Position numbers and translations under genes: made by a program
From: Guillardia theta CCMP2712
Taxonomy: Eukaryota; Protista; Cryptophyta
Assembly (NCBI RefSeq): GCF_000315625.1
Contig: NW_005434672.1
Coordinates: 1-64,000 of the forward strand
Direction of reading: 5' to 3'
Length of the DNA stretch: 64,000 nt
The notes under the pieces: generated by a model
Seen by the model: only the letters and a program-made list of their open reading frames with translations
Told to the model about the DNA's origin: nothing
Databases searched by the model: none
Part shown: in pieces, positions 3,508 through 46,855 of the stretch
Layout of the letters: the number at the start of each line of letters is the position of its first letter
How positions within the stretch are numbered: the first letter of the stretch is position 1

Positions 3508-5256
3508 ATGCGATTCTCAGTAATGCTTTCATTCCTTGCATGGCTACACATACTTGTTGGCAGCTCTACAGAGCCTGCTCATTTCAAGCCGTCACATTGC
3601 ACTGCATGCTTGAGGCTGTGGGGAGGGGGGCCAAAAGAAGACGTGAATAAGAAAGATTCTGCTGCGAAGAAGGAAGGCATGTCTGATGCCCAACGACGAA
3701 TCATGGACATCGAGGTCGAGATGGCAAGGACACAGAAGAACAAAGGTGACAGCCTATCCTCCTTTGTTCAGTTGACTGAATTGCTCCACAGCAACTATGA
3801 GTCACCTGTGTGCATTGAAGGCAAGATTAGCAGCTTTGAAGCGTCAAGTTATAGAGCAGCAAAATAAGAAATCAGGAGGGCCAGGAGAAGGCTTCGAAGT
3901 TCGTGCTACAGGAGACGCTCGAGTGGGATTCATCGGGTTCCCATCAGTGGGGAAATCAACTTTACTCACAGCTCTGACGGGTGTTTACTCTGAAGCTGCG
4001 GACTATGAGTTTACCACCCTCACATGCGTTCCCGGAGTGATGACGCATGATGGTGCTCGCATCCAAATCCTTGATCTGCCAGGTCCATTGCTTGCTCCTT
4101 GCGAGCTTGATATGAACTGAATGAAAATACATCCAGGAATTATTGAAGGCGCGAAGGATGGAAAAGGACGAGGACGTCAGGTCATTGGGTGTGCTCGAAC
4201 ATGCGATTTGATCCTGCTTGTGTTGGACGCCACGAAGCCTGTAACGCACAAGATCTTAATCGAGAAAGAGCTCCATGGGTTCGGGATCAGGTTGAATCAG
4301 AAACCACCAGAAATTTATTTCAAGAAAAGAGATCGCGGAGGATTGAACTTTCAGGTTTGGCAGAAAGTTATCAGTGCGATGTAGTACAAGTGATGACTGC
4401 AAAGGCTCTTGTGAAGCAATCTGTGCTGAACAAAGATCTTGTTGCGACCATTCTTCGCGAGTATAAGATTACTCATGCTGAGGCGAGACAATAGCACACT
4501 GTTTTACTATCCTGTTTTGACAGTGTGATAGATCATACTTCGTCAAGATTGTACAGAAGATCAGCTTATAGATGTTATCGAGGGAAACCGTGTTTATATC
4601 CCTTGCCTTCATGTTTTCAACAAGATCGACAAAGTTTTCGTTGTCTTATGCACTTCGATCACTCTGAAATCATCGTCCAGGTCAGTCGTCAGGAAATGGA
4701 GATATTTGCTTCGAAGCTTCCACATTTTCTCCCTATTTCTGGAGCTCTCGGATGGAATATCGGTAAGGATAAATCTATGATGGAGTGGATAGAGGCTTGA
4801 CATCTCAATCGTCTCATACTTATCTCACATTCAGATGTCTTAAAAAACAAGATATGGGAATACATGCACTTGACTCGCATTTATACGAAACCTAAGGGAG
4901 ACATGCCGGACTTCACACAGCCAGTGATTCTAAGAAACTATAAGTGGGTCACTTTGATTGACTCGGTTTCGTGTTTCCCTTGAATGAGCTGATGTCATTC
5001 TTAGGACTTCAGTGAAAGACTTTTGTCGACGAATCCACAAACGCCTCATGTAAGTACAATCAATCCCTTTTGAAAGTCTTTGACGGATTGCAGGGATGAA
5101 TTCAAACACGCTCTTGTATGGGGTTCAAGTGCTAAGCATTTTCCCCAGATAGTAGGAAGGTAATTTCCTTGAATTTGAAAGCTGGGAAAATGACCAGAGC
5201 ACAGTGGGCATATGCTGGAAGATGAAGATGTCATACAAGTTGTTAAAAGAATTTAA
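3508..5256 (+). CDS. DRG: Developmentally regulated GTP-binding protein (DRG/RBG, OBG family), multi-exon, with N-terminal signal peptide and leader
   Basis: [19 protein letters not shown] (G1), YEFTTLT (G2), DLPG (G3), NKID (G4), TGS tail [14 protein letters not shown]; ~46-55 bp introns (e.g. 3746-3791). Confidence 0.95.
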
Positions 5257-5289
5257 TTTCACAAGTTTGATCTGGAATACCAACATGCT

Positions 5290-7937
5290 TTAACCATTCG
5301 CAATCTGGCCATACGTACCATCATTGAAGCTGTTTGCTGGATATGCTGGGACAGGATTGATGTAACTTTGCTCTGGTGTTTGAAAGATATCTACATGCAC
5401 ATTAGATGAATGCCGATGATGTTCTTCGTGATGCGGCAGAGAGCGATTGGTCCAGTCTTCAACCAATCTGTAGAAAATATTACAAGGTGAAAGTTCATAG
5501 AAGATAGTTACTGATGAATGTTGCTTTGTAAGATTGCTGATTCCTGCAACTCCTCTCAACAACTTGTTTCATGATCTTTCTACTTACTGGAGTGGTTTGA
5601 GATTTTGCAGTTGCAACTGCTCGTAAAAGAAGAACTTTGAGGTCGATTCCCTCTCGCTTTGCCTTTCTTCTCGCTCGAAGCCCATTGCGTTGCCACAAAT
5701 AAAAACCCAAGGAAATGCGTCCTGTACGCGAACCCTCGACCTCATGTCTTCCTGGACGAAGACGGCAAATGCCCTGCAGAGCATAGTGAGAACAAAGAAC
5801 ACAATGAAAAAGAATTGCTTCTGCCTGCAAACCAAAGAAAATGTCGATGAAATCTTTGTCGTTGTCGACCGAAAAATCATACGTTCGTTTTGTTGTGACG
5901 AGGGAAAAACATCTTGAAATATCTAGTTCTGTACCTCGAGAGAATGCTGCACGAGCTTTCTGATACTTTCGAAAATTTCTAGATTTTGCGCCATAAGTGA
6001 TTTGCTGCACAGAGTCCAACAGAAGCTTTGGGCTTGACCCTCGTTTCAAAGATATCTGAAAACAAATCAGTGAGTACAGCAATGACAAACTCCTTCAGAC
6101 TTGTGGAGAAGCTGCAAGTAGCGAGCCTGAGCTCCATTCAATCCCGAGCTGCAAGTTTCCATAAGGGTCTGATCCTTCGTTAGTCAGTCTGAAGATGTTA
6201 TGTTTGCATCCTTTGCCACTCAAGGAATATTTGACAACCTTCAAGCGATTCTTAGGTCGTTGACATTCACAGCAACCTCAAACCTACCGGAATTCCCAAC
6301 CACAATCTTGAGATAGCATCTTTCCTGCTATACTTCCTCTGTTCTCTGCGGATTCTGGCTTGTTCGCGTCTTTCATAGCAAACATTATGCACGGGTTAAG
6401 CTATGCCTATCAGTACCGCAAAACATTTTCAAATATCTTCATAGAATAAGTGTGTTCAGTTTTATTCTCTTCAGAGGTTTCTTGGATCAAATTCATCTTG
6501 AAGAAATTCAGTTTACACGATGCAAAATCTGATTTTTCACCTCAAATTTCATTTTCTCATGCTCATTCATCATGGCACTCATTGCTTGATTGAGTTTTTC
6601 ATTTTTCTAACAGAATTGTGTCAAGAACTTGCTTTTCCAACACACAAGACTATCGACCCTGTGGAGCTGTTCATTCTCAAGCAAGATAATTTGAACTTGA
6701 TGATTCTGCAGCTGTCAGAGAATATAAAATTCAAAGTTGACGCTTACATGCTGCTCACTGTGAGAGTCTGACATCATTTGAAAGGACTTTGATAGTATCT
6801 GTGCAGCGAGGCATTTTACGAAATTTGAACCTACATGTTGCAATCACCTCATTCTCAAGTTCTCCTAACAAACAAGTACGGTTATGGAGTGTGCTTTTGA
6901 TGTGATTAAGCTGAAATCATTTCCAAATATCAATACCGCGAGGCAAACATGTAGGAGAAACCTCTGATGTTAACTCGTGATTCTGCTTTCTGATCATCTG
7001 AACATCGGCGTCGGTAGACGCGACAAGCTCTGACAGAGCATCAAGCTGCTCAGCATGCCTGGGACTCTGAATGAGAAGCTCCTGGCTTGGAGACTGTTCA
7101 CCTTTGTGCTTGCCGTTCGCATTCCTGCAGATTCTGTTCGTCCCTTTGCTGCGATACAGATCAGAAGTCTTCATGTCACGTTGGAGTAAACAACACCTTC
7201 ATATACATTCTTAGCTTTTGGAGTTCATGATGGAGTTCATCAATCTCATCTCTGCTCTTTGCTAGCTGCCTCTCTCTCTCAAAGAGAGATGACTGAAGAA
7301 CAACTACTTCTGCTGCAGCTGTTCTCGCTTTTGACAGGTTGCGTTCCGATTGTAAGATTGTTGTCTCTGCCTTTTGAGCTCTCTCCTCTGCATCAGAAAG
7401 TTTCTTCTTAGTGATTGAAAGGGCTCTAGATAGTGTCTCAATCTCTGCTTCCCAATCTCGATGAGAAGCTCCGTCTGTCGCGGGAAATCTGCATAAAGAG
7501 ATCAATCGGGCCGGAGGAATGTCAACACTTCTTCTCATTCCTGCTCATACTACTGTTCCCAATCCTGGCTGGTTCTACACGTAGTGCAACAAGTTCAACG
7601 TTGACTCTACCTGTCGACTAGACGTGTGGCAACTTGAGGCTTGGGTGTCAGGAGAAGGCTTCCACTGTTAGCAGACGCCCCATGAAACGTCTCGTCAAGA
7701 CCTATTTCATTGACTTGAGGAACTTGAACAGCAGCATCAATCCCCTGATGATGCTCTTGACGCTTCTCGGCCTTGGATATCTTCTTTTCGAGCATTCGGA
7801 TATGCCTGATGTATCATCCAGTGAGTGCAAGAGACAAGATGAGGAAGCAAGCAGCAGCGCATGACCTGTCTTTTTCTCTCAGAGTTGCGTGAAGCTCCTC
7901 GATCTCCTGCTTCAGTCTTCTTACAGACATCGTCATG
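5290..7937 (-). CDS. Multi-exon coiled-coil protein with C-terminal PH-like domain (PLC/Mcp5-type); 5' end unresolved and may extend past 8900
   Basis: Heptad-rich exons (7176-7490, 7865-7937); LDSVQQITYG...CFSLVTTKRTYDF..FFGLQ PH signature at ~5830-6030. Confidence 0.6.
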
Positions 7938-8723
7938 TCTGTCTCCAGCTGAGGGTCCAACTGAGGTTCTAGCTAAGGGTCCAGCTGAGGGTCCAGCTGA
8001 GGGTCCAGCTGAGGATCTCAGAGTCGTCAGACGCTTCTCGTCGCCTTCGTTGGACGTTGACGCACATGCAGGCGTGCCTGTCGCATTTCAAAAATTGGAC
8101 CAGAGACATCAAGAATGACAAGCGGTTGATTTTTTTTAGAGACTTTGTTGTGGACATGGCGAAAGCAACAAGCAAAAAAAAAGAGAAGCTTTGCGGCAGA
8201 CAGTGATGATATGATGGAATTCAAGATTCAGAAAAGTTTCGGAAACAAAAATAAAAGAGGCGCCGAATATGAAAAGTCAAGGTCACGAGGGCAGAACTCA
8301 ATGTCGTTCAAGAGAGTGATCTCTCCCTTTCTCATCTGCTTTGAATCAGTGAACTGTGTCTGCACAAGGTCTTGATAGAGCTGTCTCGTTGATAGAATGA
8401 GTGCGGTGGGGGGGGCGGTAATTAGAACATTAGTAACAGGCTGCATGAATAGTGTATCCGTTGTTGTCTTTTGTTTGCTGGACTCTGAGATCCTTCGTGA
8501 ATTCAATGATCCATGTTTAGGAAATCTTCTGCCAACATCTCATCTTTGCTTTGATGTTAAAAGCAATTTGTTATGTTTTAGAGAGAATCGGAGGGATGGA
8601 AGCACGAAGTTTTCAAGATTGAGAGAAGAAAACGAAACGATATTCAGAGGTCAAGAGGAGAAACGAATGATATTTACAGCGCTTGTTGTGTTTGCAACAA
8701 AATTAAAATAAACCTGCCTGCGC

Positions 8724-8867
<144 letters not shown>

Positions 8868-9611
8868 GCTTATTAGAATGCTAGATAGGATTTCAAGGCT
8901 TGTTATCACCTTCCTGCGCTCTAAAGAAAATAATTTGCCATGTCTTGACCAACACGCGACCGCTTCCTTTCATGACTGCAGACCGAATCATAAATGCGTA
9001 AAATTTGTGTCCACCAAAGAACATCTATAACTCCAGAGCAGGAGAGTATGCAAAAAAACATATCAGTCTATGATAAGGTGAAAGCAATGAAGTGATGGAA
9101 AATGCTTTGGGGAGAGGCACAGAGATGGCGAAGTAGAAATTTAAGCAATGAATGAAAATGCACAATTGAATAAGTACTGAGATGTGATGCACACGAATGC
9201 CCCTTGTTTGTTCAGCAGAATGCTTTCATACAGTTTCTACGCACCCTGCTCCATTCAGCGTTTTGAACGGCAGCCTCTTTACTTCGCGATAGAAGTAGTT
9301 AAAATTTCATACAACATTCAAACCAGGAAGACAACATTCTTAGGTCACTGATCAAAATCTTTGAGAAGCCGTGCGATTCCTCTGAATCTTCTGGTGTTCG
9401 CGTGTTCAATCAAAGGCAAGGAGACTGTCCTGCTTTCACTCGAAATGTTGTTTGCCACAGCTTTGAGAACTTGCTGGTCGGGATCAGCAGACTGACATTG
9501 AATTTTTTATTCCAATAGGTAAGCCCTCCTTTCTTGAGAGTCAAATCGTTGAAATCGCATTCCCTCCGCCCTGTCCTTCACATCTTGAGAGTAGTCATTC
9601 TTGGCTTGTCC

Positions 9612-10310
9612 TCAATGTAGCATCAAAGATTGAGTTGTTTGACTATCTTGTGCCTCTGCTTGATTTTCATCTTTACAATCTTTGCAACGATACTTCCTTT
9701 TTTTATGTTTGCAAATGCCCGATCCACCGCAATCTTTGCAACGATATCTCACCTTGTTATGTTCACATATTCCTGCACCACCGCAATCTCTGCATTGGGA
9801 TTTTTGCTTGTTGTGGAGACATATACTAGATCCTCTGCAATCCTTACAGTGTGACCTACGTCGCATGTGTTGGCATATGGCTGATCCTTTGCAGTCTTTG
9901 CACTGAGACTTCACTCTGTTATGGTCACAGATAGCAGATCCCTTGCACTCTTTGCAACGAGTTCGCTGTCGATTGTGTAAACATATCCCGGAGCCTTTGC
10001 ATTCCTTGCATTGCGCCCTGATTTTGTTGTGTTCACATATGCTTGATCCTTTGCAATCTTTGCACTGTGATTTGATACGGTCATGTGCACATATGCTCGA
10101 ACCCTTGCAAGCTCTACATCTGGATCTTTGCCTGTGATGTTCACACATTCTGATTTTGTTTCGTCCCCTTTTCATTTCCTTCATGAGATTTTTCTCTTGA
10201 TTGTTCGCTTCGTTGGTTTCATGTTTATCACTGTGGTCTTCATTCTCACCCATCTTGCATTGCAGTTCATCTTGTACATTCATGGTATCAATTCCTGTGT
10301 GCCGAAGCAT
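9612..10310 (-). CDS. Single-exon Cys/His 18-aa repeat protein (putative Zn-binding array)
   Basis: About 9 tandem CxHx6CxxCxGSxI units in a 232-aa ORF. Confidence 0.88.
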   Translation of the reverse strand: MLRHTGIDTMNVQDELQCKMGENEDHSDKHETNEANNQEKNLMKEMKRGRNKIRMCEHHRQRSRCRACKGSSICAHDRIKSQCKDCKGSSICEHNKIRAQCKECKGSGICLHNRQRTRCKECKGSAICDHNRVKSQCKDCKGSAICQHMRRRSHCKDCRGSSICLHNKQKSQCRDCGGAGICEHNKVRYRCKDCGGSGICKHKKRKYRCKDCKDENQAEAQDSQTTQSLMLH

Positions 10311-10874
10311 ATGTCACGTGAAACACCGCAAGCAGATGCTACAACTCCTGATTGCACATCGCCGGACAGGCAAGGTGAGGGTGACCCCTTCTATTCCACC
10401 TACTACCCCTCCCTCACATAGTCAAGAACCCCTCCCTCAACCTAAAACATATCAGGCTACGCAGCGACCAGCCATGACCAGCGCCATGGTCCAGGCTCCT
10501 TCCTCCTCATCCTCTCGCTGCAAGAGGTGCCAGCTATCTTTCTTCCATGCGACCACAGATCCTGCTTGTGGCTAAGGCTGACTAGGACGACTACCAAAGC
10601 TTCAATATATTTGACTCCCCCCAAAGGTCCATTACGAAATCTTTGTAGTTCAGGAGACATGAACTTGGAAAGTCAAGGCGATAGGACAAAGACGCCAAAC
10701 GTACACTTGTATCAAAATGATGGCATTGTCTCACCACATGAAAGGTGGAAAGAATTCACACCGTTGCAAATCATCCGGGGAAAGGGGGGGGGGGGGGGGG
10801 GGGGGACTGGAGTCAATCAATACTGATGATACAAACGACAAACTTTCAAAAGTTTTCAGATTTCACTGATATCT

Positions 10875-11565: not shown

Positions 11566-11573
11566 TTTAAAAC

Positions 11574-11630
11574 TTGACCATTTGACCATTTCACCATTTG
11601 ACCATTTGACCTTTGACCTTGAATTTGACC
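11574..11630. repeat. Short tandem repeat (TTTGACCA)n, ~7 degenerate copies
   Basis: Directly visible. Confidence 0.85.
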
Positions 11631-13592: not shown

Positions 13593-13920
<328 letters not shown>

Positions 13921-22043: not shown

Positions 22044-23014
22044 GGATGAAAGAAATTTGTGTTCCAGTTGTCTTATCTACGCGAGATATTTTGATCTCCA
22101 AACAATCCGTTTTCAAATTTACACCAAAAGATCAAGAAAGTTATGAATGTTGCTTAGTGGTTTGTGCTCAAACTTCACAGAGATGGATATTTAAGATCGC
22201 AGGTTGACAACTCGTTCCGAGAAATTAGCGGAGCAGATAAGGAATACGACCATTCTCTCTCATCTTTCACATCAATCGCCTCGGCCCTCTCTCTCCCTCT
22301 CTCTACCTTCCTCCCCCTCTGGTCGGAACCATAGCCGAAGCTTTGCCCTCTTTGAGGGGGTACAGACCCCCAGTGGTGAAGCAGAAGAAATTGCCTGACT
22401 GGGTAGGGGTTAAAAGCCGGGGGTAGGGTCAGTGAGAAGGGCGGTCAAGCTCTATCTCCTTTTCCTACGATTCCTGGTAGGATGTACCCGTGGCGTTGTA
22501 GGGGGGACTAAAGCACCGGTACTAGAGAAGTGAATCTTATGAAATGGTGGGGTTGCCCATCTCAATCTGTGCAACATCAATCGTATTGTGTCCTCAAACC
22601 CGGGGGTGGGGGTGGGGTCTCCAATCGTAAGCTGGGGTAGGGTTACTTCTTTTTTGTTTTTTTTGGCCCCACCTTTCATACTCGGAGACAGAGCGGGCCC
22701 GGGACGTTCCGACCTCCGGTGCCAGAAACCGTTACGAGTCGTTATGAGGGGCCATGGACGGGGCACAGAGAGAGGAATGAAGAGATCTTGCGATGCAACG
22801 GCGAGGAGGAGAGGGAAGGAGAGGGAAGGAGAGGGAAGGAGAGGGAGAGCAGCTGCATGAACAAGGAAAGTTGGATACCTTCTGAGTGAAGAGCTGAAAA
22901 GACTTAAAGCCTCTGATTTCCTTCCAAGCGGATCTTTGCAATGCCGTGAACCAGGTCTCTACTTGTATTACTCAACCAATGGTGGGCATGGCGCGCTTGT
23001 CTTCTCCCCTCACC

Positions 23015-26000
23015 ATGCGAGGCTTGCTCTTGCTCGTGCTCGTCTCTTGCACTCATTGCTTGAACTTTGACTCCTTCACGACAACGCCTCAAGTGCGTGG
23101 TGAACGTGGAAGGCTGAGAGGTGGTTCGCGACCGGATCGCCTGGTGAACCAGGAAACATGCATGGTCGAGTTTGAAGTTCAGACGACGTCGCTACAATCA
23201 GATGAGAGCGTCCGGATATGCGGCAGTCATGCGATGATCGGATCATGGCTGCCCGAGAAAGGGCTGCAGATGCACAAAGTGAAGGTAAGAAAAGACTTGA
23301 GATTTTGTTAGAACGACCTCGTATGGCAGGGAGGAGTTCACGGCGAGCCATGCGTGTGGGGAGCGAGAATGCAAGTGCCCGTGGGCGAGGAGCTGGAGTA
23401 CAAGTATGTCATCATGAAGGGCTATGCTGAACAAGCGCGTGCCCTTTCCATCCCCAAGGGTGAATGTGCGGTGAGGGGTGGAGGAGTTTCTTGCTATCTG
23501 GCAAGATATACTGGTGCTCATTGTCGCTCCTGGCAGGTTGAGTGGGAGTGCGACATTCCGAATCGTCTCTTGCTGATCAACAAGCTCGAAGAAAGAGTCT
23601 TCGTGCTGCAAGAAAGCTTCGATGTGGTTGGAAGAGAAATTTTCTTTGTTGAGAACCAGAATTATGTAATAGCGACGGGATTGTTAGAGTGCTACTGATC
23701 AGTACGTAAAGGTTCCTCTCGCCTTTGTTGAGCAAGTGTCAAGAGGCTCACCTGCTGATGAAGCTGGATTAGTTCCAGGTACTCGTGAGGACGCTGATGG
23801 CGTTGAGGGCGGGTTGCTGGCGGCAGTTTTCGCAGACTTGGTGGCGAATGCGACTTGTACTTGTTGAAGTTGTCTGTATGCTGTCTAATGTAGCATGTGT
23901 GATATCAATCCTGTACTCTCTTTCAGCACAAGAAGCAGACGTGTCATAAGAAAGTGTTGTGATCTGTCTGTTTGACCTTGAAGTCCCGCTCAGGTCAAAA
24001 CATCCTTTCGATTGGCAATCTGAATGCAAAGATGTTGAACGAAGTGAATCAAGAAGATACCATGTCAGCGATCTTCAAGGAGGTGGAGAAGTTTCCGCAA
24101 GTTTGCTCGGGTGATAGCCTGAGTATTGACATGTGGCGTGTCAGGTTCGAGAACATCAAGGGAAAGAATTGTCTGTTGTGGTGGCCGATCGGATGGGAAT
24201 GCAGTCTCATCTTGTAGTCTTTCCGAGGCAGGTATCGTTCTTGATTCTTGTTGTGCAAGAGCATGTCAAGGAGGAGAATGACGGGGAGAGAAAGAAGAAA
24301 CGCAACGGGGGGGGGGGAGAGGGGAAGGGAAAGGGGGACTGCCAACTGGCAGGAGGCAGGGGGCAGGGGCAAGGAGATAGGAAGGGAGGGGTGAGGGGGA
24401 GGGGGACAGGGCCGTGACTTACAGTGACAGTGGAGCGGAGAGGGACTCTTTGGCTGTCGACTTTCTCTTTCCTCCCGCTGCTCTGCCATCATCCGCCCAG
24501 TCAGCTCTCGGACCAAGTCAGAGTTGAGCTCGCCCAGAGGTCTCAGCCAGCAGGCAAACTTGATGAGGTTGGGAAACGGCGAGACATTGCTGACACGCTG
24601 TTGACCTGTGATGAGAACATGTGCCTGTTACGTTGTTACAAGATGTAGTTGATATCTTGTCGTGCCATCTGTAATCAGTAAGCTGATGTAGGTCAGACAT
24701 AGTCCATGTATCTTGTGACCATATGCATAGTGTTAGGGGTTATCGATTTCTCGATGGCATCATATCTTAGCATACATGATTCACATGTTTTTGACTCATG
24801 GCAGATGTTCGACGTTACCCTGATGTTCCTTTGTTCGCAGTTGTGCCATTGGCATCACCAACATTCTCCTCCAGCGTTCTCATAAGATTGTTTCCTTCAG
24901 CACTTATTTATCTCTCGTTCTTCCTCTTCAATCCGGTCTCTCTGCTACTCCTCCTCCTACTCTTTCTTCTTCTTTCCCCAGCTCTTGCCCTCCTCCTCCA
25001 CCACCACCACCACCACCACCACCACCACCACCACCACCACCACCACCACTTCCTTTCTCCTGGTTGATGGACTGTACAGCCTTTGCCGTGTCCTCGTTCG
25101 TGCAGCAACTTCTTTTCAAGCTGATTGGTGCTACTATATGCTCCCTGCTCCTTCATCCTCTGACTCCCCACACAGGCGCTTCCTCTCTCTTTCTCTCGAC
25201 CATCCTCCTCCTCCCCGCCCCTCTCGCTAGGAAGGTTCTTTCCCTCCTCGCCCCCGTCCTCGGAGCTGCACTTCTGCCCTTGAGGTAGAGCCCAAGGAGC
25301 TATGGAGGAGTCTGACAAGCAGAGCAGGGTGGTTTGGAATTTCCTGGTCCGTCCTGGAATTTCTCTCTTCCTCCTTGTTGTTTGCAGGATTTGGCAACCT
25401 GCAGTCTCGGTGGGCCATGCTGCTCCTGCTACCTGCTCTCCTCTCCCCCCTCCCCCTTCTCTTCCTGCTTCTCCCTTTTGATCTCCCCTACCTCCCACTC
25501 CTCCCCTACCTGGTTCTCCTCTCCTCTCCTCTCCTCTCCTCTCCTCTCCACTCCACTCCTCTCCTCTCCTCCCTCTCCTCCCCACTCCACTCTCTCTCTT
25601 TCAAATCTCCTTCGCCCCCTTCTGCTTCACCTCTTCTGTGCGTGTCATGAATTCAGCGGCTCGCATCTCGTTGAGCAAGCAGCAGGTCTTGCAGGGGCTT
25701 CGCGGGCTCCTCCTCCTCCTCCTGTCCTCGCACGATCGCCTCATCTCGCTCCTGCTTCTTCCTGTGCGAGCAGGAGGAGCAGCAGGACGAGGAGGAGCCA
25801 GTGCAATCAAGAGCATGCGCCCGCTTCCAGCAGCCTGTTTGAAGATGACAGCAGGTGATGGCAGAAGAGAACCATGAGGAGGGAGTTCGACTTGTTCATG
25901 TTCTTGTCCTGGTTCTACTTCTTGATGACGATGACGACGACAATGATGTTTAGGTGGAGCGGGTGGGAGGGGTGGAGTGAGATGTGTCCATCTTCAAGCA

Positions 26001-26291
26001 TTATTATGATACCTGAACTTGTTGAACTCATTTGTTGCACTCTTGTAGTTGTCATTGTTTGTTTCAACATCTCTGCTGTTTTCCTGACTTGTCGAACTTT
26101 CAGACACGATTGTCTTTGCTGCTTCTTTCTCTACCGAGTTGATCAGTAGACCTTTCCGCTTCATCTTGTCTCTCTCTCATCGCGGACTCACTGTTCTTGC
26201 CCCACCCTTGCCGCAGCAGGAGAGGAGCAGGGGGAACAACGTGAGAGGAACAGAGCGAAAGAGCCTGCGATCTGTCAGTGCATCGAGGAGG

Positions 26292-26327
<36 letters not shown>

Positions 26328-26963
26328 CATATGGTGCAGCAAGAGAATGAAAAAGGAGCGAAGGAGGATGTGGCGGAACAAAAGGTGGAGAGAAAAGTTC
26401 GTTTCGAGGTGGACGGGCTGGCTGTGGAGGAGGGGCAGAAGGTTGGCATCGTTGGTGACCTGCCGGGTATGGGGAACTGGAATCCTTGCCAGGTAAGGGG
26501 GAGGAGGAAGGGGAGGAGGGGGGGGGGGAGGAGGAGGGCAGCAGAAGCAAGAGGAGTAGGAGGAGACGAGGTTTCAGTTGACGATGAGGAGAGAAATTTC
26601 ATTCTTCTGACATTGGAGGAGGCGGCCATCATGCAGCCGGCATACAACGTAAGGGAAAAGAAGCGCGTGTGGTCGGTATGAGATCCTACATTCCTCTTCA
26701 TTCTTCCTCCTCCTATCGCTCTTGTTCTCATCTCACTCTTCCTCTATCCTCCTTCTTCCCTCCCCCTTACCCGTATGACGTGGCTTCAGATAACGCTCTC
26801 TGTCCCCGCGGACTCGACGGTGAGCTACAAGTATGTGGTGCTTCCAAGAGAAGAAGAGGAGAGGAAGACGAAGACTCTCTGGGAAACTGGGCAAAATCGC
26901 ATCTTCTCTCCTGATAGCCATGATGTTGTCTGTGAGATTTTTAATCAACACTCCGTCCCTTGA
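23015..26963 (+). CDS. Starch-binding protein with two CBM20 domains and a signal peptide (multi-exon)
   Basis: VEFEV..VRICGSHAMIGSW..LEYKYVI..VEWE..NR (23160-23640) and VRFEV..VGIVGDLPGMGNW..VSYKYVV..WETGQNR (26390-26940); MRGLLLLVLVSCTHC signal peptide; linking exons only partly resolved. Confidence 0.8.
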
Positions 26964-29371: not shown

Positions 29372-29413
<42 letters not shown>

Positions 29414-34029: not shown

Positions 34030-35331
34030 CATTCCATGGCATTTACTAATGCCCAATTATAAATTAATATCCTTTTAACAAACACTTGTACCTGTTAATT
34101 TGATCATAAGCATACAGTTTTTAGTCAATTTTGTACCAGGATGATTTGTACCACTCAGTACTCTTTTATATTTGTTTTAAGCATTTGAGTTCCGGCTTAC
34201 ACGCCTCTTGGCTGCTCTCTACCCTGTGTACCGGTATGTTTGTCTGATGTGGAGGGGGTAGGGTTATTCGTATATTTCGATACACGCTCATGAAATCTTA
34301 TTAGTGTCAGCCATTGACGAGTGTAGTAAATCCAGCCAATAAGTATTTTTGTTTTCAAATCAAGGAGTCGTATGCCAGCTAGCAACGGCAATCTTTTTTT
34401 TCTACACCGGTTGTTTTATATGGATACCTACCCTATGTCTATAGGGTGCCACCGAAACACAGGTCCCCTTGCCCCCGATCAAAGAGCAAATAATTTTCAT
34501 TAAAAATCCTGAGATCTCCATTGCAAGTATCCCTCCCCTCCTCCTTCCATGCTCTTCTCCCTCCCTCCCTCCCCCCTGCTCCCCTCCCTTCCTCCCTGCT
34601 CCCTCCCTCCCCCCTGGTCCCCTCTCTCCCCGTTGCTTCCCTTTCCCTTGCGCTCCAGTTATAGACACCAACAAATGAATCTTCACCGTCGTGTATCAGC
34701 AACAAATGGAATTCAGAGAAGGCGAAGGCAGGAAGATTTCGATACATTCTTGGAGCAGGAAGAGACTTGTGATGAGTCAAAGACACCTCAAGATTTGAAG
34801 CTTCGAATGATCCTGCATACGTCAGTTGATGATCGAGACTTGCCCAGGATGAACTGGAAAAAGCCAAGCAGTAATNNNNNNNNNNNNNNNNNNNNNNNNN
34901 NNNNNNNNNNNNNNNNNNNNNNNNNNNNNNNNNNNNNNNNNNNNNNNNNNNNNNNNNNNNNNNNNNNNNNNNNNNTTATTCTTGAGCCTGGCACAGGGGT
35001 TCAATATCAGTGTGAAGATCACAGGGGCGTTGAAGTGAATCGACTGGGCATGATCAAATCGCTGCACTCAGATGCACAGGTTGTCGAAGTGTACATCATG
35101 TACAATGGAGTCCTCTTGGAACATGTAGACGAAACCATTATAACTAATCGAGTGCCCTGTGTGGCCCTGAAAAGAATTTTGAACAAGGTTGGAAACCGTG
35201 ATTGTTATCAATCAATTTACAAGGATACGGATGAAATGAATGCTATACCAAAAATGTGTTTCTTCAGCTTTCCTTGCATGTTGGAGCATGCCAACGATGA
35301 TCTCCACGATAATTTCAGAGTGCATGGGTAT
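34030..35331 (+). mobile_element. TIR element copy 1 (left part only, interrupted by N gaps); ORF starts at 34675
   Basis: Near-identical to 37766-38971, starting exactly at CATTCCATGGCATTTACTAATGC. Confidence 0.85.
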
Positions 35332-35431
35332 NNNNNNNNNNNNNNNNNNNNNNNNNNNNNNNNNNNNNNNNNNNNNNNNNNNNNNNNNNNNNNNNNNNNN
35401 NNNNNNNNNNNNNNNNNNNNNNNNNNNNNNN
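34876..35431. other. Two ~100-N assembly gaps (34876-34975, 35332-35431)
   Basis: N runs; comparison with copy 2 suggests the first gap replaces only ~7 bp (ttgaata). Confidence 0.95.
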
Positions 35432-37765: not shown

Positions 37766-40381
37766 CATTCCATGGCATTTACTAATGCCCAATTATAAAT
37801 TAATATCCTTTTAACAAACACTTGTACCTGTTAATTTGATCATAAGCATACAGTTTTTAGTCAATTTTGTACCAGAATGATTTGTACCACTCAGTACTCT
37901 TTTATATTTGTTTTAAGCATTTGAGTTCCGGCTTACACGCCTCTTGGCTGCTCTCTTCCCTGTGTACCGGTATGTTTGTCTGATATGGAGGGGGTAGGGT
38001 TATTCGTATATTTCGATACACGCTCATGAAATCTTATTAGTGTCAGCCATTGACGAGTGTAGTAAATCTAGCCAATAAGTATTTTTGTTTTCAAATCAAG
38101 GAGTCGTATGCCAGCTAGCAACGGCAATCTTTTTTTTCTACACGAGTTGTTAGAGATTGATAAATATCCCATGTCTATAGGGTGCCACCGAAACACAGGT
38201 CCCCTTGCCCCCGATCAAAAGGCAAATAATTTTCATTAAAATCCTGAGATCTCCATTGCAAGTATCCCTCCCCTCCTCGTTCAATGCTGTTCTCCCTCCC
38301 TCCCTCCCCCCTGCTCCCCTCCCTTCCTCCCTGCTCCCTCCCTCCCCCCTGCTCCCCTCTCTCCCCGTTGCTTCCCTTTCCCTTGCGCTCCAGTTATAGA
38401 CACCAACAAATGAATCTTCACCGTCGTGTATCAGCAACAAATGGAATTCAGAGAAGGCGAAGGCAGGAAGATTTCGATACATTCTTGGAGCAGGAAGAGA
38501 CTTGTGATGAGTCAAAGACACCTCAAGATTTGAAGCTTCGAATGATCCTGCATACGTCAGTTGATGATCGAGACTTGCCCAGGATGTACTGGAAAAAGCC
38601 AAGCAGTAATTTGAATATTATTCTTGAGCCTGGCACAGGGGTTCAATATCAGTGTGAAGATCACAGGGGCGTTGAAGTGAATCGACTGGGCATGATCAAA
38701 TCGCTGCACTCAGATGCACAGGTTGTCGAAGTGTACATCATGTACAATGGAGTCCTCTTGGAACATGTAGACGAAACCATTATAACTAATCGAGTGCCCT
38801 GTGTGGCCCTGAAAAGAATTTTGAACAAGGTTGGAAACCGTGATTGTTATCAATCAATTTACAAGGATACGGATGAAATGAATGCTATACCAAAAATGTG
38901 TTTCTTCAGCTTTCCTTGCATGTTGGAGCATGCCAACGATGATCTCCACGATAATTTCAGAGTGCATGGGTATATATTTTTTCATGAAGACGACATCGAA
39001 AATAATAAATACTGTGAAATCTCTCACTTCTCGATTGCAAACCCGGCACCACTCGTTGAAAAGATGGCGCAAACAACTTTCTGTTCAGCGGCGGAGTACA
39101 ATCGGATTTGTCGAGATATGACCGAGGTCAAAATGATGTTCAATCAGTGGTTGAAGTCAAGGAGTAAGACGTTTGAGAAGAATTTTGTTTGTTGTTTTCA
39201 ATTGATTTTCGTTGCTTTCGATTGCTTTACAATTTTTGTTTGTTGTTTTCCATCGCTTTACGTGTGACATGCTCGTCACAAGCCATGTTTATGAACTCCG
39301 AAAACCTCAGCATCTTTTCGCTGCCTGTTTCACAACCTCGGAATCATCGCCGTCTTTGTCCAAACCTACATCCGCAAGATGTTCCTATTCGCTTGGGCAC
39401 CCGCTTGTCTCCATGCTTCTCTTCCCCACAACTGATAAAAACATTACATTCGCAGGAATGATATTCAATGGAGACTCTACCTTATGTCTTAGCTCGCTGG
39501 TTCTGATACTGAGAAGTCCTGAGGGAAGTTCATTCACATCCGGCATTCATGGCGTTGAATAGTTCATAGATCTTACACTTGCGATCTATTTGCAATCAAG
39601 TTGCCTACACGACTGACATGCCTTATGCTTATGTGCTTGGTTGACACAGAGAGGAGGAAGTATGGGTCTTGTAGAATGCCAACCAAAACAACAATCAATT
39701 GCCTAATCAGAGAGATCCTTTACGAGAAACAATCTAGACACCAAACAACTCTACAGTCAGAGATGTGCTCGAAGCTCAAGCATACGAAAGAGGGTTGTGG
39801 ATGCTTGATCACCAAAAACGAGCAATTCTCCATCTTGCAATGAGCATCAAAAGGATTCGAAAACAGCCCTAGGCTCTGGAATCCATGGCGATGCTGATTC
39901 CTACAGCTTCCTTTGAAAAACAAGCTCGAGCTGTTTGAAACGTCGTCTTGCAGTATGCCGCAAAAGTACAAACATTCACACATGATCCAACCTTGGATGG
40001 CCTGGAGCTTGAATAAGATGAAAGAGCCATTGGCTGAGAGCCATCTGGGATTCAAACAAACGCCGCCTGCGCCGGCGGGTGCGGATGCAGAGCAATGGGG
40101 GAAGGGTAGGGCAGGCGATTTGGTTGTATATGCACCCCCCAGGCGTGTAAAAGCGTGTAAGGTCAAAAATAGTTTTAATGTTTGAAACCTTGTTGTTTGG
40201 AGGAAGCAAGAATACTTGTAAACCTAAAACTGCTCGACACGGTCCCCGATTCAAACATACTTTCAACCATTATCGAAGTTTCTGGTACAAATTTTCAGTG
40301 CGCCGACCATTCAAAAATCCTGGGCTGAAGTACCCCGCTCGAAAATGATCAAAAGCGAGCATTAGAAAATGCCATGGAATG
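37766..40381 (+). mobile_element. TIR element copy 2, complete (2616 bp), 23-bp TIRs, CA...TG ends, no obvious target-site duplication
   Basis: CATTCCATGGCATTTACTAATGC (37766-37788) vs GCATTAGAAAATGCCATGGAATG (40359-40381), 1 mismatch; second copy at 34030. Confidence 0.9.
38410..40185 (+). CDS. Element-borne protein of unknown function (first exon ~260 codons; downstream exons approximate)
   Basis: ATG at 38410; ORF nearly identical in both element copies; no clear DDE motif recognised. Confidence 0.6.
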
Positions 40382-40790
40382 GCGCCCGCCACGGTCGGTC
40401 ACGGTCTCGGGAGTCTCGGATGCCGCCGACTAGCAGGCTCCCCGGCGACCGTCACACCGGTACGGTCACCGGGTGACGGTCGCCGCTCCGCCGCCGGCCC
40501 GCCGGGCTGAACTTTCCGACGGAGTTGCAGTGCCCGGGCCAGGGGTCGGACTCGGACCGTCCGATCTCTCTCCAGCGGACCCCGGGCTGAGTGGCAGTGA
40601 ACGGTGCCGCATGACCCGACGGTGACTCTGTGACTGAGTTGACTGAGCCTGTCACCGCAAGCTCAGGTATCGGACAATCGGACTCAGTCCCAGTGGGCCG
40701 CCGGGTGACACTAGGCCGTCACCGTCCGAACAGCGAACAGTCATGGTTTAGGTTCGTCGTCGGACTCCGACGAACCTGAAGACATGTAGC
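40382..40790. repeat. GC-rich palindromic-word island 4, right part (left part 37585-37765; split by the TIR element)
   Basis: Same composition on both sides of the element. Confidence 0.7.
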
Positions 40791-40904
40791 CGATCACATC
40801 AATGGCGAGGGGCAACGATCGACTCCGATGAGAACAATTTATGACGGCGCAAACAAGTAAATATGTACACAAGGAACATAGGAACAGCTGATTAGCGTAG
40901 ACAC

Positions 40905-41457
40905 TCATCGATCCTGTTCCAGACTTGCTTTTTGCCCGGCCTCTTCATCATTGGCATCTGCTGAGCGTGTACTTTGAAAGAGCTTTCGACCTCTCTTCCT
41001 CGCTGAGTTTGCATTTCCTTTCGAAGATCCCATCTTCGCTTCGGACGGTTGATCCTCGAGACCGTCATCACGCCTGAAGTAAGAGCTTATCCTGCTTTCA
41101 CGCAGTGTGGGAGACGACAAGACGAGTCTGCGTTTGCTACAAGAGTTGACCGATTCCCTCCTGAAAGGATGTCAACAACACTCAAGAAGGGCATTTCTAC
41201 CACCTTCGCTTCTGTTTAGAGTTTGATCTCGAATTTAGTTCAGGGCTTGTTGAGAAGTGTCTTAGTCTTCGAAGTTGTAGGCTTCTAGCGAGAATGTTGG
41301 TTTTGTCAGTTGTGATGATTTGCACTTCGGCATTGCTTGCATCATTTGTCTGGACATGGTTTTCGCACATGTTGTGCAACCTGAGATTGGAACCGATTTC
41401 TGGGAGATTCACCATCAGACCTTTTGACGGCAAGTTGGCAAGGAAGAGGTTGGCCAT
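40905..41457 (-). CDS. DDA1: DET1- and DDB1-associated protein 1 (DDA1)-like
   Basis: MANLFLANLPS and QIITTDKTNILARSL resemble the two conserved DDA1 blocks (FLxxLP; QIIxTEKTNILxR); recognised from memory. Confidence 0.55.
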
Positions 41458-42139
41458 CGCGGGTTCTGCAAGCAACAGTCATTCGTACATGAATAATCTT
41501 TACAGAGTGATAGAAAATGAGGACTTTTTCCTTCTTTCACAAATTAAGTCGATCTAAGATTGCAATCAATCAACCCCAGCTTCGACCAACTTTTGAATCT
41601 TTGAAATGTTCCGCATCTCGGAAATCATTGATCGAAGTTTGGCAAACTACTTGCTTAAGCTAAGCTCCAACGATGATACTGATTCGTCTATTACCTGGTG
41701 ATGGTTAAGGGTATATTGTATCGCTAACTACCACAAAACACGTTTAATACTGCGCAGCATGCTTCGCTTGTCGCTGAGAAGATATACCTTCTAATCTTGA
41801 CCCCTTCTACCATGCTCTTATATCTTTGACAAATCTTCTTCTCTTCTCATCGTCTGCATCATTGGCTGGCCCACCGCCCCTGCCGGCGCTAACACACGCA
41901 TACTGCATGTCGACCATCACGCTTCAAATTTGAGAAAACTGGGTGAATTGATGTGGTGGGGGTACACTACCTGGTATCTGCACCCGTCTTTTACAGATAT
42001 AAATAATGTCAAAATGTGGGTAGGGTGCTAAAGGCAACCGGTCATAGGGCATCTGGACATGGGGTAGGTAGGAGAGGCTTGTTGGAGGGACAACGTAACG
42101 ATCATAAACGGTTCGTGGTTCCGAAGAAATTTAACGGAT

Positions 42140-42360
42140 CATGGGCCGGGCGCCGGCCGGGCCGCGGCCGCACTCAGCGGTGAATCAGTGAGCCTGAGAG
42201 TACCGGGTCACCCGGCCCGGCCGGCGTCACCGAGCCGCCTGCACGGAACCCTAGCCACCCTAGTATCGCATCCTTTATATGAGACTGGGCCTTTGACAAG
42301 ACCAACCGTAACTTAGTAGTCGTAACCGGACGGTTCAACTTGGCAACGCCGAGTCGGATT
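42140..42360. repeat. GC-rich palindromic-word island 5 (short)
   Basis: gggccgggcgccggccgggccgcggccg, gtaccgggtcacccggcccggccgg. Confidence 0.65.
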
Positions 42361-42364
42361 GAAC

Positions 42365-43876
42365 TCAATCATCATCTCTCCGTCTCTTTCTTCCATCACG
42401 ACCAGGATTGACTCCAGCACTTTGTCTCCTTGCCCTGAAAAGATGGTTCGGCATCAGTCGCAGTTTTTCATCCTTTTTTTTGCTTCAGAGTACCTGGGTG
42501 CCCTAGTGGCAGACTGTGGAGTGTCGTGCTCTGCGTCGTGATCCTCCTGCTCCACCTTGGGCGCGCTGAAAAAGAGGTCAGCGATGATTAAGCAGCTTGC
42601 ATGAGATTCACCGCCCTCTCCCTCTTGGCGGCTTCTTGATGGTATTCTCCTCCTCTTCCTCTTCGTGATTCGCCTCCACTCCTTTCTTGCTCGCTGATCC
42701 GCGACCTGCTGGTGGCCGCTGCGGTGTAGGAGTTTCCATGGCCGAAATGTGCTCACCGAGAATCGCTGTCTCCTCTTTCTTCAAAACCACCTGCAGCTCC
42801 TTGGCCCAAGCAAATATTTCTGATCCTTTCTGATTGTACTGCATCGCATTAATGAAAATAAGCGCCATGTCCGACATGAACTCTCTAACATTTCCTTCAT
42901 ATTCGTTCTTGTCAAGCTTCTTTTTAACATCATTGAGGCATATGGGCTTTTTGATAATCGCGTGATAATCAGGAGCTTCTCGCTTTGTGACAGGCTTCTT
43001 GAAGGGCTCAGACTTTTCATGGCCGAAGATTGCCTTCCATAGTTTCATCATGGCTTCATTCCGTTTTCTCGCGACGCCCAAGGGAAGATCTTCCGAAGCA
43101 ACGCTCGAAACATCTTCTGAATTGTCTTGTGCATGAGAAACAGGCGGAGTGCTTGTATTGGTGGAGAGCTTTGATCCTGGAGTTGTGTGCTTGCCTACTG
43201 GTGTGGGTTTGGTGCTGGAAGGCGTCGTCTTCTCGTCCTTGACCTGCACGGGAGTTTTGGTCTCACTCGTAGAGGCTGCGGGTGTTGTAGCTGGTTGCGC
43301 TTCAGCCGAGGACGCAGGGCGTGATGGAGTGAGAGGCGCCTCGGCAGCTTGAATCTCCTTCTTGGTCTCAGACTTGTCGCCTTCTGCCTGCCCTGCACTA
43401 GCAGGTTTCGCAGGGGTCGGCTGATCGAGAACATTCAAGTCAGGGTTATTAGAACATTCTTTCACCCATCGCTCGAGAGTATCTTGATCTGCACTCGCTG
43501 AATTGTTGATATCCTTCTCTGTTTCTTCTATCTGCATTTGAACCCTAGACAGCTCAGCTTTGATGTCTGCTTTTCTTTGCTCCCTCAGGCGTTCGATCAT
43601 CTCTCCTGCTCGCTCAGATGGTGTTGGGTCCATGACTTTCCGCTGCGTCCTCCCTGCAGAACCTTTCCTCGAGTCCTCTGCCAGGACCATTTCTCTCCAC
43701 TTGTTCTCACACTTGCGGGGAGTGAAGAACTCAGTGTCTCTCCGCATGGATCCCGGGTACTGCAGTGCCTGTCGAACCAGCTTGCCGATCATGGAGAAGT
43801 CTGGCACCATGCTTCCTCCATGTCGCTGCACAGCCTCGGCCAGCACCAGCTGTTCTCCTGCCGTCCACTCCGACAT
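42365..43876 (-). CDS. BRD8-like protein: SANT/Myb-like N-terminus, coiled coil, bromodomain
   Basis: WTAGEQLVLAEAVQRHG..FFTPRKCENKW; bromodomain SEPFKKPVTKREAPDYHAIIKKPICL..IFINAMQYN; two short 3' introns inferred. Confidence 0.88.
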
Positions 43877-43973
43877 ACCTGCCGCGCGCGAGCCTTGCTC
43901 TGAGGCGAAGTCCTTAGTCGTTACGAACCGTTACCAAAGAAAACTCCCCAGTTACAGATGTAACGCCCTTGAG

Positions 43974-45401
43974 ATGAGGCTGACTTTGAGGAAGGGATCC
44001 GATATGCTTGTGCTGGCGGCGTTTGCGCTCTTATGCTGCGAGGGCAGCGCAGCATTCATGGCGTCTTCCTTCATTCAACGACTTCGAACCTCTTCTGTCC
44101 GTCCAATCCAGCTACTGAGGACTCAGATGCATCCTCATCGGCTGTCAACATGGCGTTCAAGCTCAAGAAGAGCCCACATCACTAGCATGGCAAGGACGTT
44201 TGAGTTCGTGCCATATGGACAGAAGTTTGAGTCCGACAAGAAGAGTATCTGTGTGGATGGTCTTGTCCCTGGCACGAGGTTCCGTCATCTCTCACGTTTT
44301 CTTTGCTCCTTCTAACTGTTGGGTCGCAGCTTGCAGCTCACACACTGGAACGGCAATGAGACACCCAAGGAATACAAGGCCGATCTCTCTACGGATATTG
44401 TCTTGAAATTCATCCATGCAGAGTTGGGCTCAGAGAAAAACAAGTGGAATGATGCCGTGGTCTTGAACAACCACTTCGACACAGACGGGCTCCTTTCGGT
44501 TTGGATTATGCTGAATCCAGAGGCAGCGATGAAGTACGAGCGAAGAATGGTGGATGCAGCAGCGGCTGGAGATTTTGACGAATGGGGATTGTCAGATTGG
44601 GGCCTGCAGCTTGATCTTGCTTTCTCGAAGCTTGCATCACAATGCGATGGTGACAAACAGGCATATGAGAAGCTTTTACCCATGGTTGAGGACATATTGG
44701 TCAACGTTGACGATCGTGAGGAGCTTTGGAAGGAAGAGCTTGATGAGGTCGACGGCAGGAGTCTGTGAACCAAATCTGTCTTATTTAACAAAATCCCCCC
44801 AGATGTACAAGATCTTTGACATGGTTTGCGATGACAAGATCGTGACTACCCGAGTTTTCGACGAGAGGTCCAAATACACCAAGAACGCAGGAAAGATCGG
44901 AGATGTGGGCGTAGTGGTCCATCCTCCCGGTAGTCCCAAAGTTAACGGGAAAGTCTTGTCAAGGACCTTTCCTATCGGCCAAGCGACCGACGCTCAGGTG
45001 ATAGCGAGGTACTTGATGGCTTACGAACAACCCGATGGAAAGTTTCATTATGAATATGAACGGCCGCATCATGCATGGGCAGAGACGGTGAAACGAGCCA
45101 ATCTGAGTAAACCCAACGCTCCTTTGATTTTGGAGAACCTCGGGAGTGAGTGGACAACCGCCGGGTTGAACGGCATGACAGCAATATGCAGTATGATCTA
45201 CTATTTATCAAAAATCTTTTCTTGACCCCTCACGATTTTGCAGAAACGCAAATACCCATTTCCAAAGGTCCAATGGAGGTATTTGTGACGTCATGGTGAC
45301 TCCCATCTGAGATGTTGTGGATTACTTTCTACCAGGTTGCTGGAGAGCTTTTGGATCTTGAACGCTCTCTTCTTCCAGTATTTATACAGAAGGGTGAATG
45401 A
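43974..45401 (+). CDS. DHH-like/DUF6687-type protein with bipartite plastid-stroma leader
   Basis: VDG..LTHWNGNETP..ADLST..NNHFDTDGLLSVW..AGDF motifs; leader MLVLAAFALLCCEGSAA-F followed by an S/R-rich transit peptide. Confidence 0.75.
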
Positions 45402-45512
45402 GGAAATGATCAGCTGCACTCGAATGAAATTCACAGACTAAGCCTTTTACTGTGTACATCTCGTGCCACAAACTCAGCGTAAGGGTCAAACCTATCCTAC
45501 AGTTTCAAATAT

Positions 45513-46855
45513 TTATCCAAGGGCGTTCACGCAATGGAGATCCTTGAAGGCCTCCTGTTAAAGGAAACATCAGGGAACTAAGAGGCACAAGATTGCGTCT
45601 TACCCCGAGGCGCTCCACAGCGGACTCCTCAGCCTTGCGCAGCCAAACACGGGGATCGTAGAACTTCTTGTTGGGCTTGTCAGCTCCCTCAGGATTTCCA
45701 ATCTGGCCCTGCAAGTAATCGTGCTTCTCCTTCTCAAACTTGCGGATTCCGTCCCAGCAGGCCCACTGGTCTAAGAGTGAGACAAGCATCGTTTCAGCAA
45801 TACCACTTCACCTGAATGTCGGTATCGATGTTCATCTTGATGACTCCATGATTCACAGCAGTGTCAATCTTGTCCTTCTCGGATCCCGATCCACCGTGGA
45901 ACACAAAGTTGACAGGCTTGTCCTCCTTGCACTTCAACTGCTCCTTGATATACTTCTGGGCGTTGCCAAGAATGTCGGGCCTGAGCTGAACGTTTCCAGG
46001 CTTGTACACACCGTGGACGTTACCGAAGGCGGCAGCGATAGTGAACATGGAGTTGGGGACGGCAGCAAGGGCCTTGTACACCTGCCACACCTCATCTGGC
46101 TGGGAGTAGAGGGAGGCGTTGTCCACATTCTCGTTGTTCACACCGTCCTCCTCTCCACCAGTGATACCGAGCTCCATCTCCAACAAGCAGTTAATCTTAG
46201 CCATACGGTTCATGTACTTGACACACAGATCAATGTTTTCCTGGAGAGGCTCCTCAGACAAATCGATCATGTGGGAGCTGAAGAGAGGCTCTCCGTGCTC
46301 CTTGAAGTACTTCTCGTCAGCGTCCAACATGCCATCGAACCAGGGAAGAAGCTTCTTCGCGCAGTGATCAGAGTGGAGAACCACGGGGACGCCATAGTGC
46401 TCGGCCATCAAGCGGACATGGTGAGCACCCTGTTTGTGATAAATTCAGCAAAATCTGAAGCAAATCTACCACACGACAAATACCGCAATGGATCCAAGGA
46501 CGCAAGCCTTCAAGGTCTCCTTGGGGTTGTCGAGGGCCTTTCCGGCGTAGAACTGAGCTCCTCCGTTGGAGAACTGGATCATAACAGGGCAGTTGTACTT
46601 CTTGGCAGCCTCCAAGACCTGGTTGACGCTGCTAGAGGAAACACAGTTGACTGCGGGGATGGCGAATCCCTTGTCCTTGGCGGTCTGAAGGAGATCCTTG
46701 AGGGCCTGACCAGTGACAACTCCAGGCTTCACAGAGTCTGGGAGGTTGGGGAAGTGCTTGCCGCCTCCTCTCATGCGGAGAGTTGGGGCATGTAGAAGAG
46801 TCGCTGCATCAACGGCGGCGAACGCGACAGCCGCACAGAGGATGGCTCGTAGCAT
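45513..46855 (-). CDS. FBA: Fructose-1,6-bisphosphate aldolase class II (type A) with signal peptide
   Basis: VKPGVVTG, FAIPAVN, LHSDHC, SSHMIDLSEE, GITGGEEDG, FGNVHGVY, VFHGGSG, KMNIDTD, PNKKFYDPRVWLR. Confidence 0.97.

Follow-up and report, generated by a model that had tools for sequence, protein, structure and literature searches.

Related cleavage motifs and periplastid targeting signals

Ubiquitin and NEDD8 precursors, such as polyubiquitin, Ub-L40 and Ub-S27a, are processed by enzymes of the UCH and USP types after the sequence L-R/A-L-R-G-G. The motif described here, [LI]-x-[LM]-R-G-G, is the same as the tails of ubiquitin (LRLRGG) and NEDD8 (LALRGG), its variable second position covering both R and A, and as in those precursors the hexapeptide stands directly N-terminal of the protein to be released. 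Unlike in the ubiquitin precursors, no beta-grasp fold precedes the tail, and the piece that would be discarded is a signal-peptide-derived leader used in organelle import. A second parallel is provided by coronavirus PLpro, a papain-like protease that cuts polyproteins at LXGG and is also a deubiquitinase. Viral papain-like proteases illustrate that a short linear site resembling the ubiquitin tail in an unrelated chain suffices for cleavage after GG, but there a viral enzyme acts on a viral substrate.

A matching architecture, in which 10-30 residues separate a signal peptide from a short conserved motif, is found in the PEXEL/TEXEL element of Apicomplexa (RxLxE/Q/D), which is cut by plasmepsin V or ASP5 and licenses onward transport. 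PEXEL/TEXEL differs in sequence, in the aspartic class of its proteases and in destination, and its consensus is not present in the leaders described below.

The bipartite periplastid signals of cryptophytes and diatoms were reportedly defined by Gould in 2006, and are treated in ASAFind 2.0, as a signal peptide followed by a transit-like peptide without an aromatic residue at position +1. Published descriptions of these signals give only the absence of Phe at +1 and the pattern of charges over the first 25 residues, and no C-terminal motif. Proteins of the periplastid compartment (PPC) have so far been recognised by a negative criterion only, the lack of Phe+1, and only 25% of them are recovered by the most recent predictor (PMC12136025). 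In diatoms, the ubiquitin-specific periplastid protease ptDUP of SELMA is sited where imported chains emerge, but it is proposed to remove ubiquitin rather than leaders, and a phylogeny from 2025 finds its clade absent from cryptophytes (PMC12412216).

Three leaders with near copies of the ubiquitin tail

The window, that is, the whole stretch of 64,000 nucleotides of Guillardia theta DNA that was analysed, contains genes for a class II fructose-bisphosphate aldolase, a DRG-type GTPase and a CBM20 starch-binding protein. As a preliminary description had pointed out, each begins with a signal peptide, a spacer (8-16 residues) and a hexapeptide identical to LRLRGG in five of six positions, followed after 8-20 residues by the conserved domain, and the three leader sequences quoted there are all present as given. 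Only eight six-frame matches to LRLRGG with at most one mismatch occur in the window, three of which are these sites.

The aldolase leader is encoded on the minus strand (46763..46855) and comprises the initiator Met at 46855, a signal peptide of 17 residues (46805-46855), the spacer ATLLHAPT and LRMRGG (46763-46780), the last directly followed by GKHFPNLPDSVKPGVV. About eight residues past the GG the class II aldolase fold begins (PF01116, E 2.2e-55). Exons 1-2 span 45797..46855 on the same strand, with exon 1 at 46484-46855 and, after an intron, exon 2 extending to about 45797.

The DRG leader lies on the plus strand (3508..3627, from sequence and translation), where a signal peptide at about 3508-3567 and a 14-residue spacer lead to LRLWGG at 3610-3627, which has Trp where the aldolase set has an invariant Arg. 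An in-frame stop (3493-3495) is found directly upstream of the Met at 3508, and the ancestral DRG start, MSDAQRRI, lies 20 residues past the GG. Exons 1-2 (3508..4078, plus strand) consist of exon 1 (3508-3745), a GT..AG intron (3746-3791) whose removal rejoins the conserved QKNK-A-TMSH, and exon 2 (3792-4078). The splice joint 3743>3790 (cut +2) is present in RNA contigs of three runs, and the leader is covered by spliced RNA contigs of three runs that start at 3380-3449. The product matches Pfam MMR_HSR1 (E 1.6e-14) and is the third DRG paralogue of the genome. A search with exon 1 returned no homologue within the length range searched, and the 80 loci found in a metagenome scan with exon 2 are all leaderless cytosolic DRGs from other eukaryotes.

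In the CBM20 gene the leader (23015..23125, plus strand) starts at the Met at 23015, Mets at 22979 and 22988 being in the same frame, and its signal peptide is separated by 16 residues from GRLRGG (23108-23125). The start of the CBM_20 domain (PF00686, E 2.7e-6, above the curated cut-off; exon residues 49-88) at 23159..23284 of the plus strand follows 12 residues after the GG, in the exon shared with the leader. The motif sits exactly at the predicted junction between leader and mature protein. The two gaps in the assembly, at 34876-34975 and 35332-35431, are both over 11 kb away from the three leaders and irrelevant to the finding, since one unbroken frame spans leader, motif and first conserved residues.

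Leader class and association with the periplastid compartment

All three leaders show the features of signal peptides, as called by a hydropathy heuristic: a basic n-region, an uncharged hydrophobic core and small residues at -3 and -1. The likely cleavage sites, assigned by eye, are VDA|A, GSS|T and THC|L, with no aromatic residue at +1. [quoted passage not shown]

The two leaders with Phe+1 that had been offered as internal controls proved to be real and free of the motif when their AA|F and VC|F sequences were checked. One, ..EGSAA|FMASS (43974..44057, plus strand, Phe codon 44055-44057), continues into a transit peptide without the motif, and the other, ..NVVC|FAPS (60904..61029, minus strand, Phe codon 60904-60906), belongs to a DUF155/RMND1 protein and also lacks it. 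Among leaders found independently of the motif, it is present in 6/6 of those without Phe and in 0/4 of those with Phe+1. The view that the motif is a real, selected feature of non-Phe (periplastid) signal-peptide leaders and is absent from Phe+1 leaders is supported.

An indirect link to the compartment itself is provided by aminoacyl-tRNA synthetases. The leader of TyrRS1 gave the 'blob' pattern of the PPC in Phaeodactylum (PMC4494062), and the locus matching the Gt_TyrRS1 primer (L033) has a leader that ends in KLRGG. Similarly, VRLRGG closes the leader of the predicted PPC TrpRS and LPLRGG that of the predicted PPC ProRS, the public ProRS model (GUITHDRAFT_81499) being without leader. In an EF-1alpha-like gene LRLRGG abuts GKEKHH, so that a cut after GG would leave the canonical EF-1alpha N-terminus. 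The localisation of the TyrRS1 leader, the predicted PPC TrpRS and ProRS and the motif-free Phe+1 leaders together support a tie between the motif and PPC cargo. The preliminary description had proposed the motif both as a PPC marker and as a deubiquitinase cut site; the first part is borne out as a feature of PPC-class leaders by the three synthetases, the position at the junction and the orthologues described below, while cleavage is what we infer from it. No description of the motif was found in the searchable literature. A positive, conserved motif would be a direct marker for the cryptophyte periplastid and nucleomorph proteome, and would help to mend truncated gene models such as the leaderless one of ProRS.

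Conservation in orthologues

All 22 environmental aldolase orthologues retain [LI]-x-[LM]-R-G-G at the same position. In the alignment with them R, G and G are each found in 23/23 sequences, as are L/I and L/M at their positions, whereas the spacer columns reach a conservation of only 0.24-0.57. Three of the sequences carry an indel right after the GG, and outgroup aldolases with Phe+1 leaders are without the motif. The records are metagenomes, and we infer that the orthologues come from cryptophytes. For TyrRS1, exon 1 searched against 1.84 billion representatives gave the self hit and weak hits at residues 99-205, past the leader, and a full-length search with ProRS returned no leader-bearing orthologues.

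A possible maturation signal and the enzyme that may read it

Taken at their most probable reading, which we consider fairly likely, the aldolase, DRG and CBM20 genes would be extra, endosymbiont-compartment copies of cytosolic-type proteins, with periplastid leaders that end in [LI]-x-[LM]-R-G-G and are cleaved after GG. The proteins, of which the aldolase is gluconeogenic, the DRG GTPase ribosome-associated and the CBM20 protein starch-binding, would enter the periplastid compartment in a SELMA-dependent manner and would then lose the leader; that the cut falls after GG is probable, as judged from the position of the motif. More speculatively, the cutting enzyme may be a deubiquitinase, a periplastid cysteine protease specific for ubiquitin tails. 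Maturation of ubiquitin precursors and removal of ubiquitin from SELMA cargo must already take place in the periplastid compartment. Deubiquitinases normally bind the ubiquitin fold too, and the leaders have only 8-40 residues from signal peptide to motif, with no ubiquitin similarity or fold; with 8-16 such residues, the predicted window leaders are not ubiquitin fusions. A UfSP/ZUFSP-like peptidase (nucleomorph Gt2_270), a type reported to be retained in all four sequenced nucleomorphs, is a possible candidate for the transit peptidase, as a lead from the literature only. A wider proposal, put forward tentatively and with somewhat less than even confidence, is that in cryptophytes the ubiquitin-tail mimic would be the general signal for maturation of nucleus-encoded proteins of the periplastid compartment and the nucleomorph, that a co-opted ubiquitin or UBL protease would serve as transit peptidase, and that SELMA-coupled cutting would fix the cargo in the compartment. 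The motif makes two questions testable, namely which enzyme matures PPC-resident proteins and what replaces ptDUP in cryptophytes, and if deubiquitinase and peptidase were indeed one, a ubiquitin-dependent translocon would be coupled to presequence removal in a new way.

A different enzyme could read the same site. The mitochondrial processing peptidase MPP reads Arg at -2/-3, and a dedicated non-ubiquitin peptidase, for example of the M16 type, might likewise recognise Arg, which never varies at position -3 relative to the putative cut in the aldolase set, the likeness to ubiquitin being convergent. Enzymes of the MPP/SPP type recognise short motifs in which the residues at -2/-3 are fixed (PMC3774753), and a search of USP loci (12 inspected; 47 USP exon matches in the genome) found no PPC-directed deubiquitinase, none of the 12 having a signal peptide or the motif within 1.5 kb, in keeping with the lack of a cryptophyte ptDUP. 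Against this, four to six positions match ubiquitin/NEDD8, with L/I at -6, L/M at -4 and R, G and G all kept, the exact ubiquitin hexapeptide is over-represented in the genome, and diatoms have a different stromal motif (A/S, L, small residue; PMC3774753). We regard a non-ubiquitin peptidase as unlikely.

Still less probable is that the motif stays uncut and is read by a PPC or SELMA factor for recognition or retention, as in the decoy idea of the preliminary description, or that it blocks engagement of the next translocon. This would agree with its strict association with non-Phe leaders and with SELMA being ubiquitin-based (PMC12412216), but the motif invariably closes the leader, directly abutting the ancestral N-terminus as in the EF-1alpha case, a placement required for cutting but unnecessary for a binding tag. 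Moreover, it is established that the ubiquitin receptors known so far contact the fold, through its Ile44 patch, rather than the tail.

Frequency of the motif in the genome

The enrichment of the motif behind signal peptides that the preliminary description had led one to expect was found in a sample of 264 kb of the G. theta genome. An in-frame signal-peptide-like Met 12-90 residues upstream is present for 10/17 sites with exact LRLRGG, against a background of 3.5% over all positions (p = 5e-11), for 4/18 sites with one mismatch (p = 0.003) and for 1/18 sites with independent permuted hexapeptides. Among unrelated eukaryotic contigs (166 kb), none of 18 [LM]RGG sites lies behind a signal peptide. 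The LRLRGG codon pattern occurs 353 times in the genome, compared with about 130 for permuted patterns (140 for RLRLGG and, after discounting one repeat, about 120 for GGLRLR). The exact ubiquitin hexapeptide is 2.5-fold over-represented. An accidental origin in leaders rich in Arg, Leu and Gly, although each of the three window copies has one mismatch and signal peptides were called by a heuristic whose background is 3.5%, is very improbable and indeed refuted by this enrichment, by the far lower permuted counts, by the invariance across the 22 aldolase orthologues and by the unrelated contigs. Synonymous codons vary freely among the LRLRGG hits, which shows that selection is at the amino-acid level. 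Genome-wide, the exact hexapeptide is found on about 200 genes, and on more if variants are included.

Leaders Ending in a Ubiquitin-Tail-Like Motif

The three motif sites quoted in the preliminary description are present in the window exactly as reported, each at the end of a signal-peptide leader and closely resembling the ubiquitin tail LRLRGG. The class II aldolase leader starts at Met 46855 on the minus strand and comprises a signal peptide of 17 residues, a spacer of 8 and LRMRGG (46763–46780), the conserved aldolase residues beginning about 8 residues past the motif. The leader of the DRG GTPase (plus strand) starts at Met 3508, which is preceded by an in-frame stop, and carries LRLWGG (3610–3627), separated from the ancestral start by a 20-residue Lys-rich linker. 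In the CBM20 starch-binding protein (Met 23015, plus strand), Pfam CBM_20 begins 12 residues after GRLRGG (23108–23125), with leader and domain in one exon. The two control leaders of the window with Phe directly after the signal peptide (Phe+1) proved genuine and lack the motif. Both assembly gaps are over 11 kb away from every leader site, and neither falls within any of the genes concerned.

RNA contigs from three independent runs start at 3380–3449 and continue through the DRG leader, which the splice 3745|3792 (a GT..AG intron) joins in frame to the GTPase; downstream of this first intron follow three more GT..AG joints and one aligned as AG..AT (4480>4530). The genome holds three DRG paralogues, the window copy being the additional one among them. 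The aldolase exon structure was read from the sequence, and its exon 1 recurs as one unit in 22 related contigs.

A second CBM_20 match (26394–26489, ORF 26139–26678) follows 3 kb after the first on the plus strand, with low-complexity sequence in between, and may represent a second module of the first CBM20 gene or a separate gene. A Lys-rich stretch such as GGAKKNAKGG often directly follows the GG (window 3628–3687 and 46727–46762, the latter on the minus strand; further loci L040, L007 and L017), whereas the spacer before the motif is often free of Lys. This distribution may be relevant if the ubiquitin-based translocon SELMA requires N-terminal lysines for ubiquitination.

Enrichment Behind Signal Peptides

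Just 8 six-frame hexapeptides of the window lie within one mismatch of LRLRGG, and three of them are the aldolase, DRG and CBM20 sites. The LRLRGG codon pattern has 353 matches in the 87 Mb assembly; when 10 kb around each of the first 20 were sampled, the exact hexapeptide was encoded at 17. A signal-peptide-like start, heuristically an in-frame Met 12–90 residues upstream with a hydrophobic core free of charges, precedes 10 of these 17 sites, as compared to 3.5% of the positions in all six frames (p = 5e-11). Among permuted hexapeptides, none overlapping a central match, 1/18 has such a start, and of 18 [LM]RGG sites in unrelated eukaryotic contigs (166 kb) none stands behind a signal peptide. 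Codon patterns of equal composition match 140 (RLRLGG) and 323 (GGLRLR) times, but the latter count is inflated by one repeated 17-mer, GGAGGTCTCCGACTCCG, accounting for about 60% of the first 100 matches listed, so that same-composition patterns are much rarer than LRLRGG. The sampled sites and the comparison of codon patterns each point to some 200 genes carrying the exact hexapeptide. Since synonymous codons vary freely among the LRLRGG matches, the constraint lies on the peptide rather than on DNA or RNA. One LRLRGG locus, L010, is a methyltransferase gene.

The 17-mer GGAGGTCTCCGACTCCG occurs on both strands of most large contigs in clusters of 2–6 copies within a few kb (e.g., C5:692914-707104 and C10:557397-571346) and resembles a gene family or a dispersed repeat with clustered copies. 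On the minus strand of L015 (G000:C3:1060284-1070283), near 3883, another signal-peptide-like start, MIAIAVVALSALSGAHP.., precedes LGGLRR, a permuted motif that may reflect chance or a different leader type.

Conservation in Aldolase Orthologues

Searching metagenome and SRA assemblies with aldolase exon 1 yielded 22 exon-1 open frames of 60–76% identity with a common intron position, presumably from cryptophytes. All 22 keep [LI]-x-[LM]-R-G-G, and together with the window copy R, G and G are each found in 23/23, while the second residue of the motif can be R, N, A, C or S and conservation of the spacer columns is merely 0.24–0.57. The variants include LALRGG, the tail of NEDD8, and three of the sequences carry a three-residue insertion immediately after GG. 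More distant aldolase homologues with Phe+1 leaders show no such element.

Association with the Periplastid Compartment

Starch and 80S ribosomes are located in the periplastid compartment (PPC), where turning exported triose phosphate into hexose would require an aldolase; the functions of the CBM20, DRG and aldolase proteins fit a periplastid role. The proposal that the motif marks PPC cargo is supported by aminoacyl-tRNA synthetases. Locus L033 opens with a perfect match to the Gt_TyrRS1 forward primer (Gile et al., 2015, PMC4494062), and KLRGG closes its leader, which when fused to GFP produced the periplastid "blob" in Phaeodactylum (PMC4494062). The TrpRS and ProRS copies whose signal leaders lack Phe+1, predicted to be the PPC copies (PMC4494062), end their leaders in VRLRGG and LPLRGG, respectively, and the motif is absent from the Phe+1 (plastid/mitochondrion) copies of these synthetase genes. 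Counting solely leaders found independently of the motif (non-Phe: three window genes and three synthetase genes), it is present in 6/6 non-Phe versus 0/4 Phe+1 leaders.

In specialist papers from 2015 and 2025 the missing Phe+1 is the sole feature that defines periplastid leaders (2025: PMC12136025), and the diatom stromal cleavage motif (PMC3774753) differs from the motif of these G. theta leaders. In the open literature searched, LRLRGG, RLRGG or LRGG is nowhere combined with cryptophyte, periplastid or transit-peptide in this sense. The ProRS locus (L040:1003-2697, G000:C179) is a single-exon frame of 564 residues; the public model GUITHDRAFT_81499 (481 aa) begins 83 residues into it and thus lacks signal peptide and LPLRGG leader. 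Truncated gene models may have helped to conceal the motif.

Possible Removal of the Leader

The motif always forms the last part of the leader and is identical to the cleavage site of ubiquitin and NEDD8 precursors, which makes a maturation site the best reading. Judged by sequence, the leader is likely cleaved at the motif, and the cut would fall after GG. In an EF-1alpha-like gene LRLRGG adjoins GKEKHH, so that such a cut would restore the canonical EF-1alpha N-terminus. A deubiquitinase might be the cutting enzyme, as some UCH, USP and viral enzymes accept short LRGG peptides as substrates, although we know of no periplastid deubiquitinase in cryptophytes. Against this enzyme class stand the lack of a ubiquitin fold before the motif, 12 USP loci of the genome, at which a leader was looked for and none found, and the absence of the diatom periplastid deubiquitinase ptDUP from cryptophytes (PMC12412216). 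The literature offers a lead in the UfSP/ZUFSP-like "putative deubiquitinating enzyme" encoded in all four sequenced nucleomorphs (PMC6559170).

Further Features of the Window

A 422-residue open frame (42608–43876, minus strand), without leader and unrelated to the motif, looks by eye SANT/Myb-like at its N-terminus and bromodomain-like at its C-terminus. Of two simple-sequence tracts, at 24985–25070 and 59700–60080, one would be translated as poly-His, poly-Thr or poly-Trp according to the reading frame, and in the other a unit of about 24 nt (IISFISYN) is repeated in tandem.
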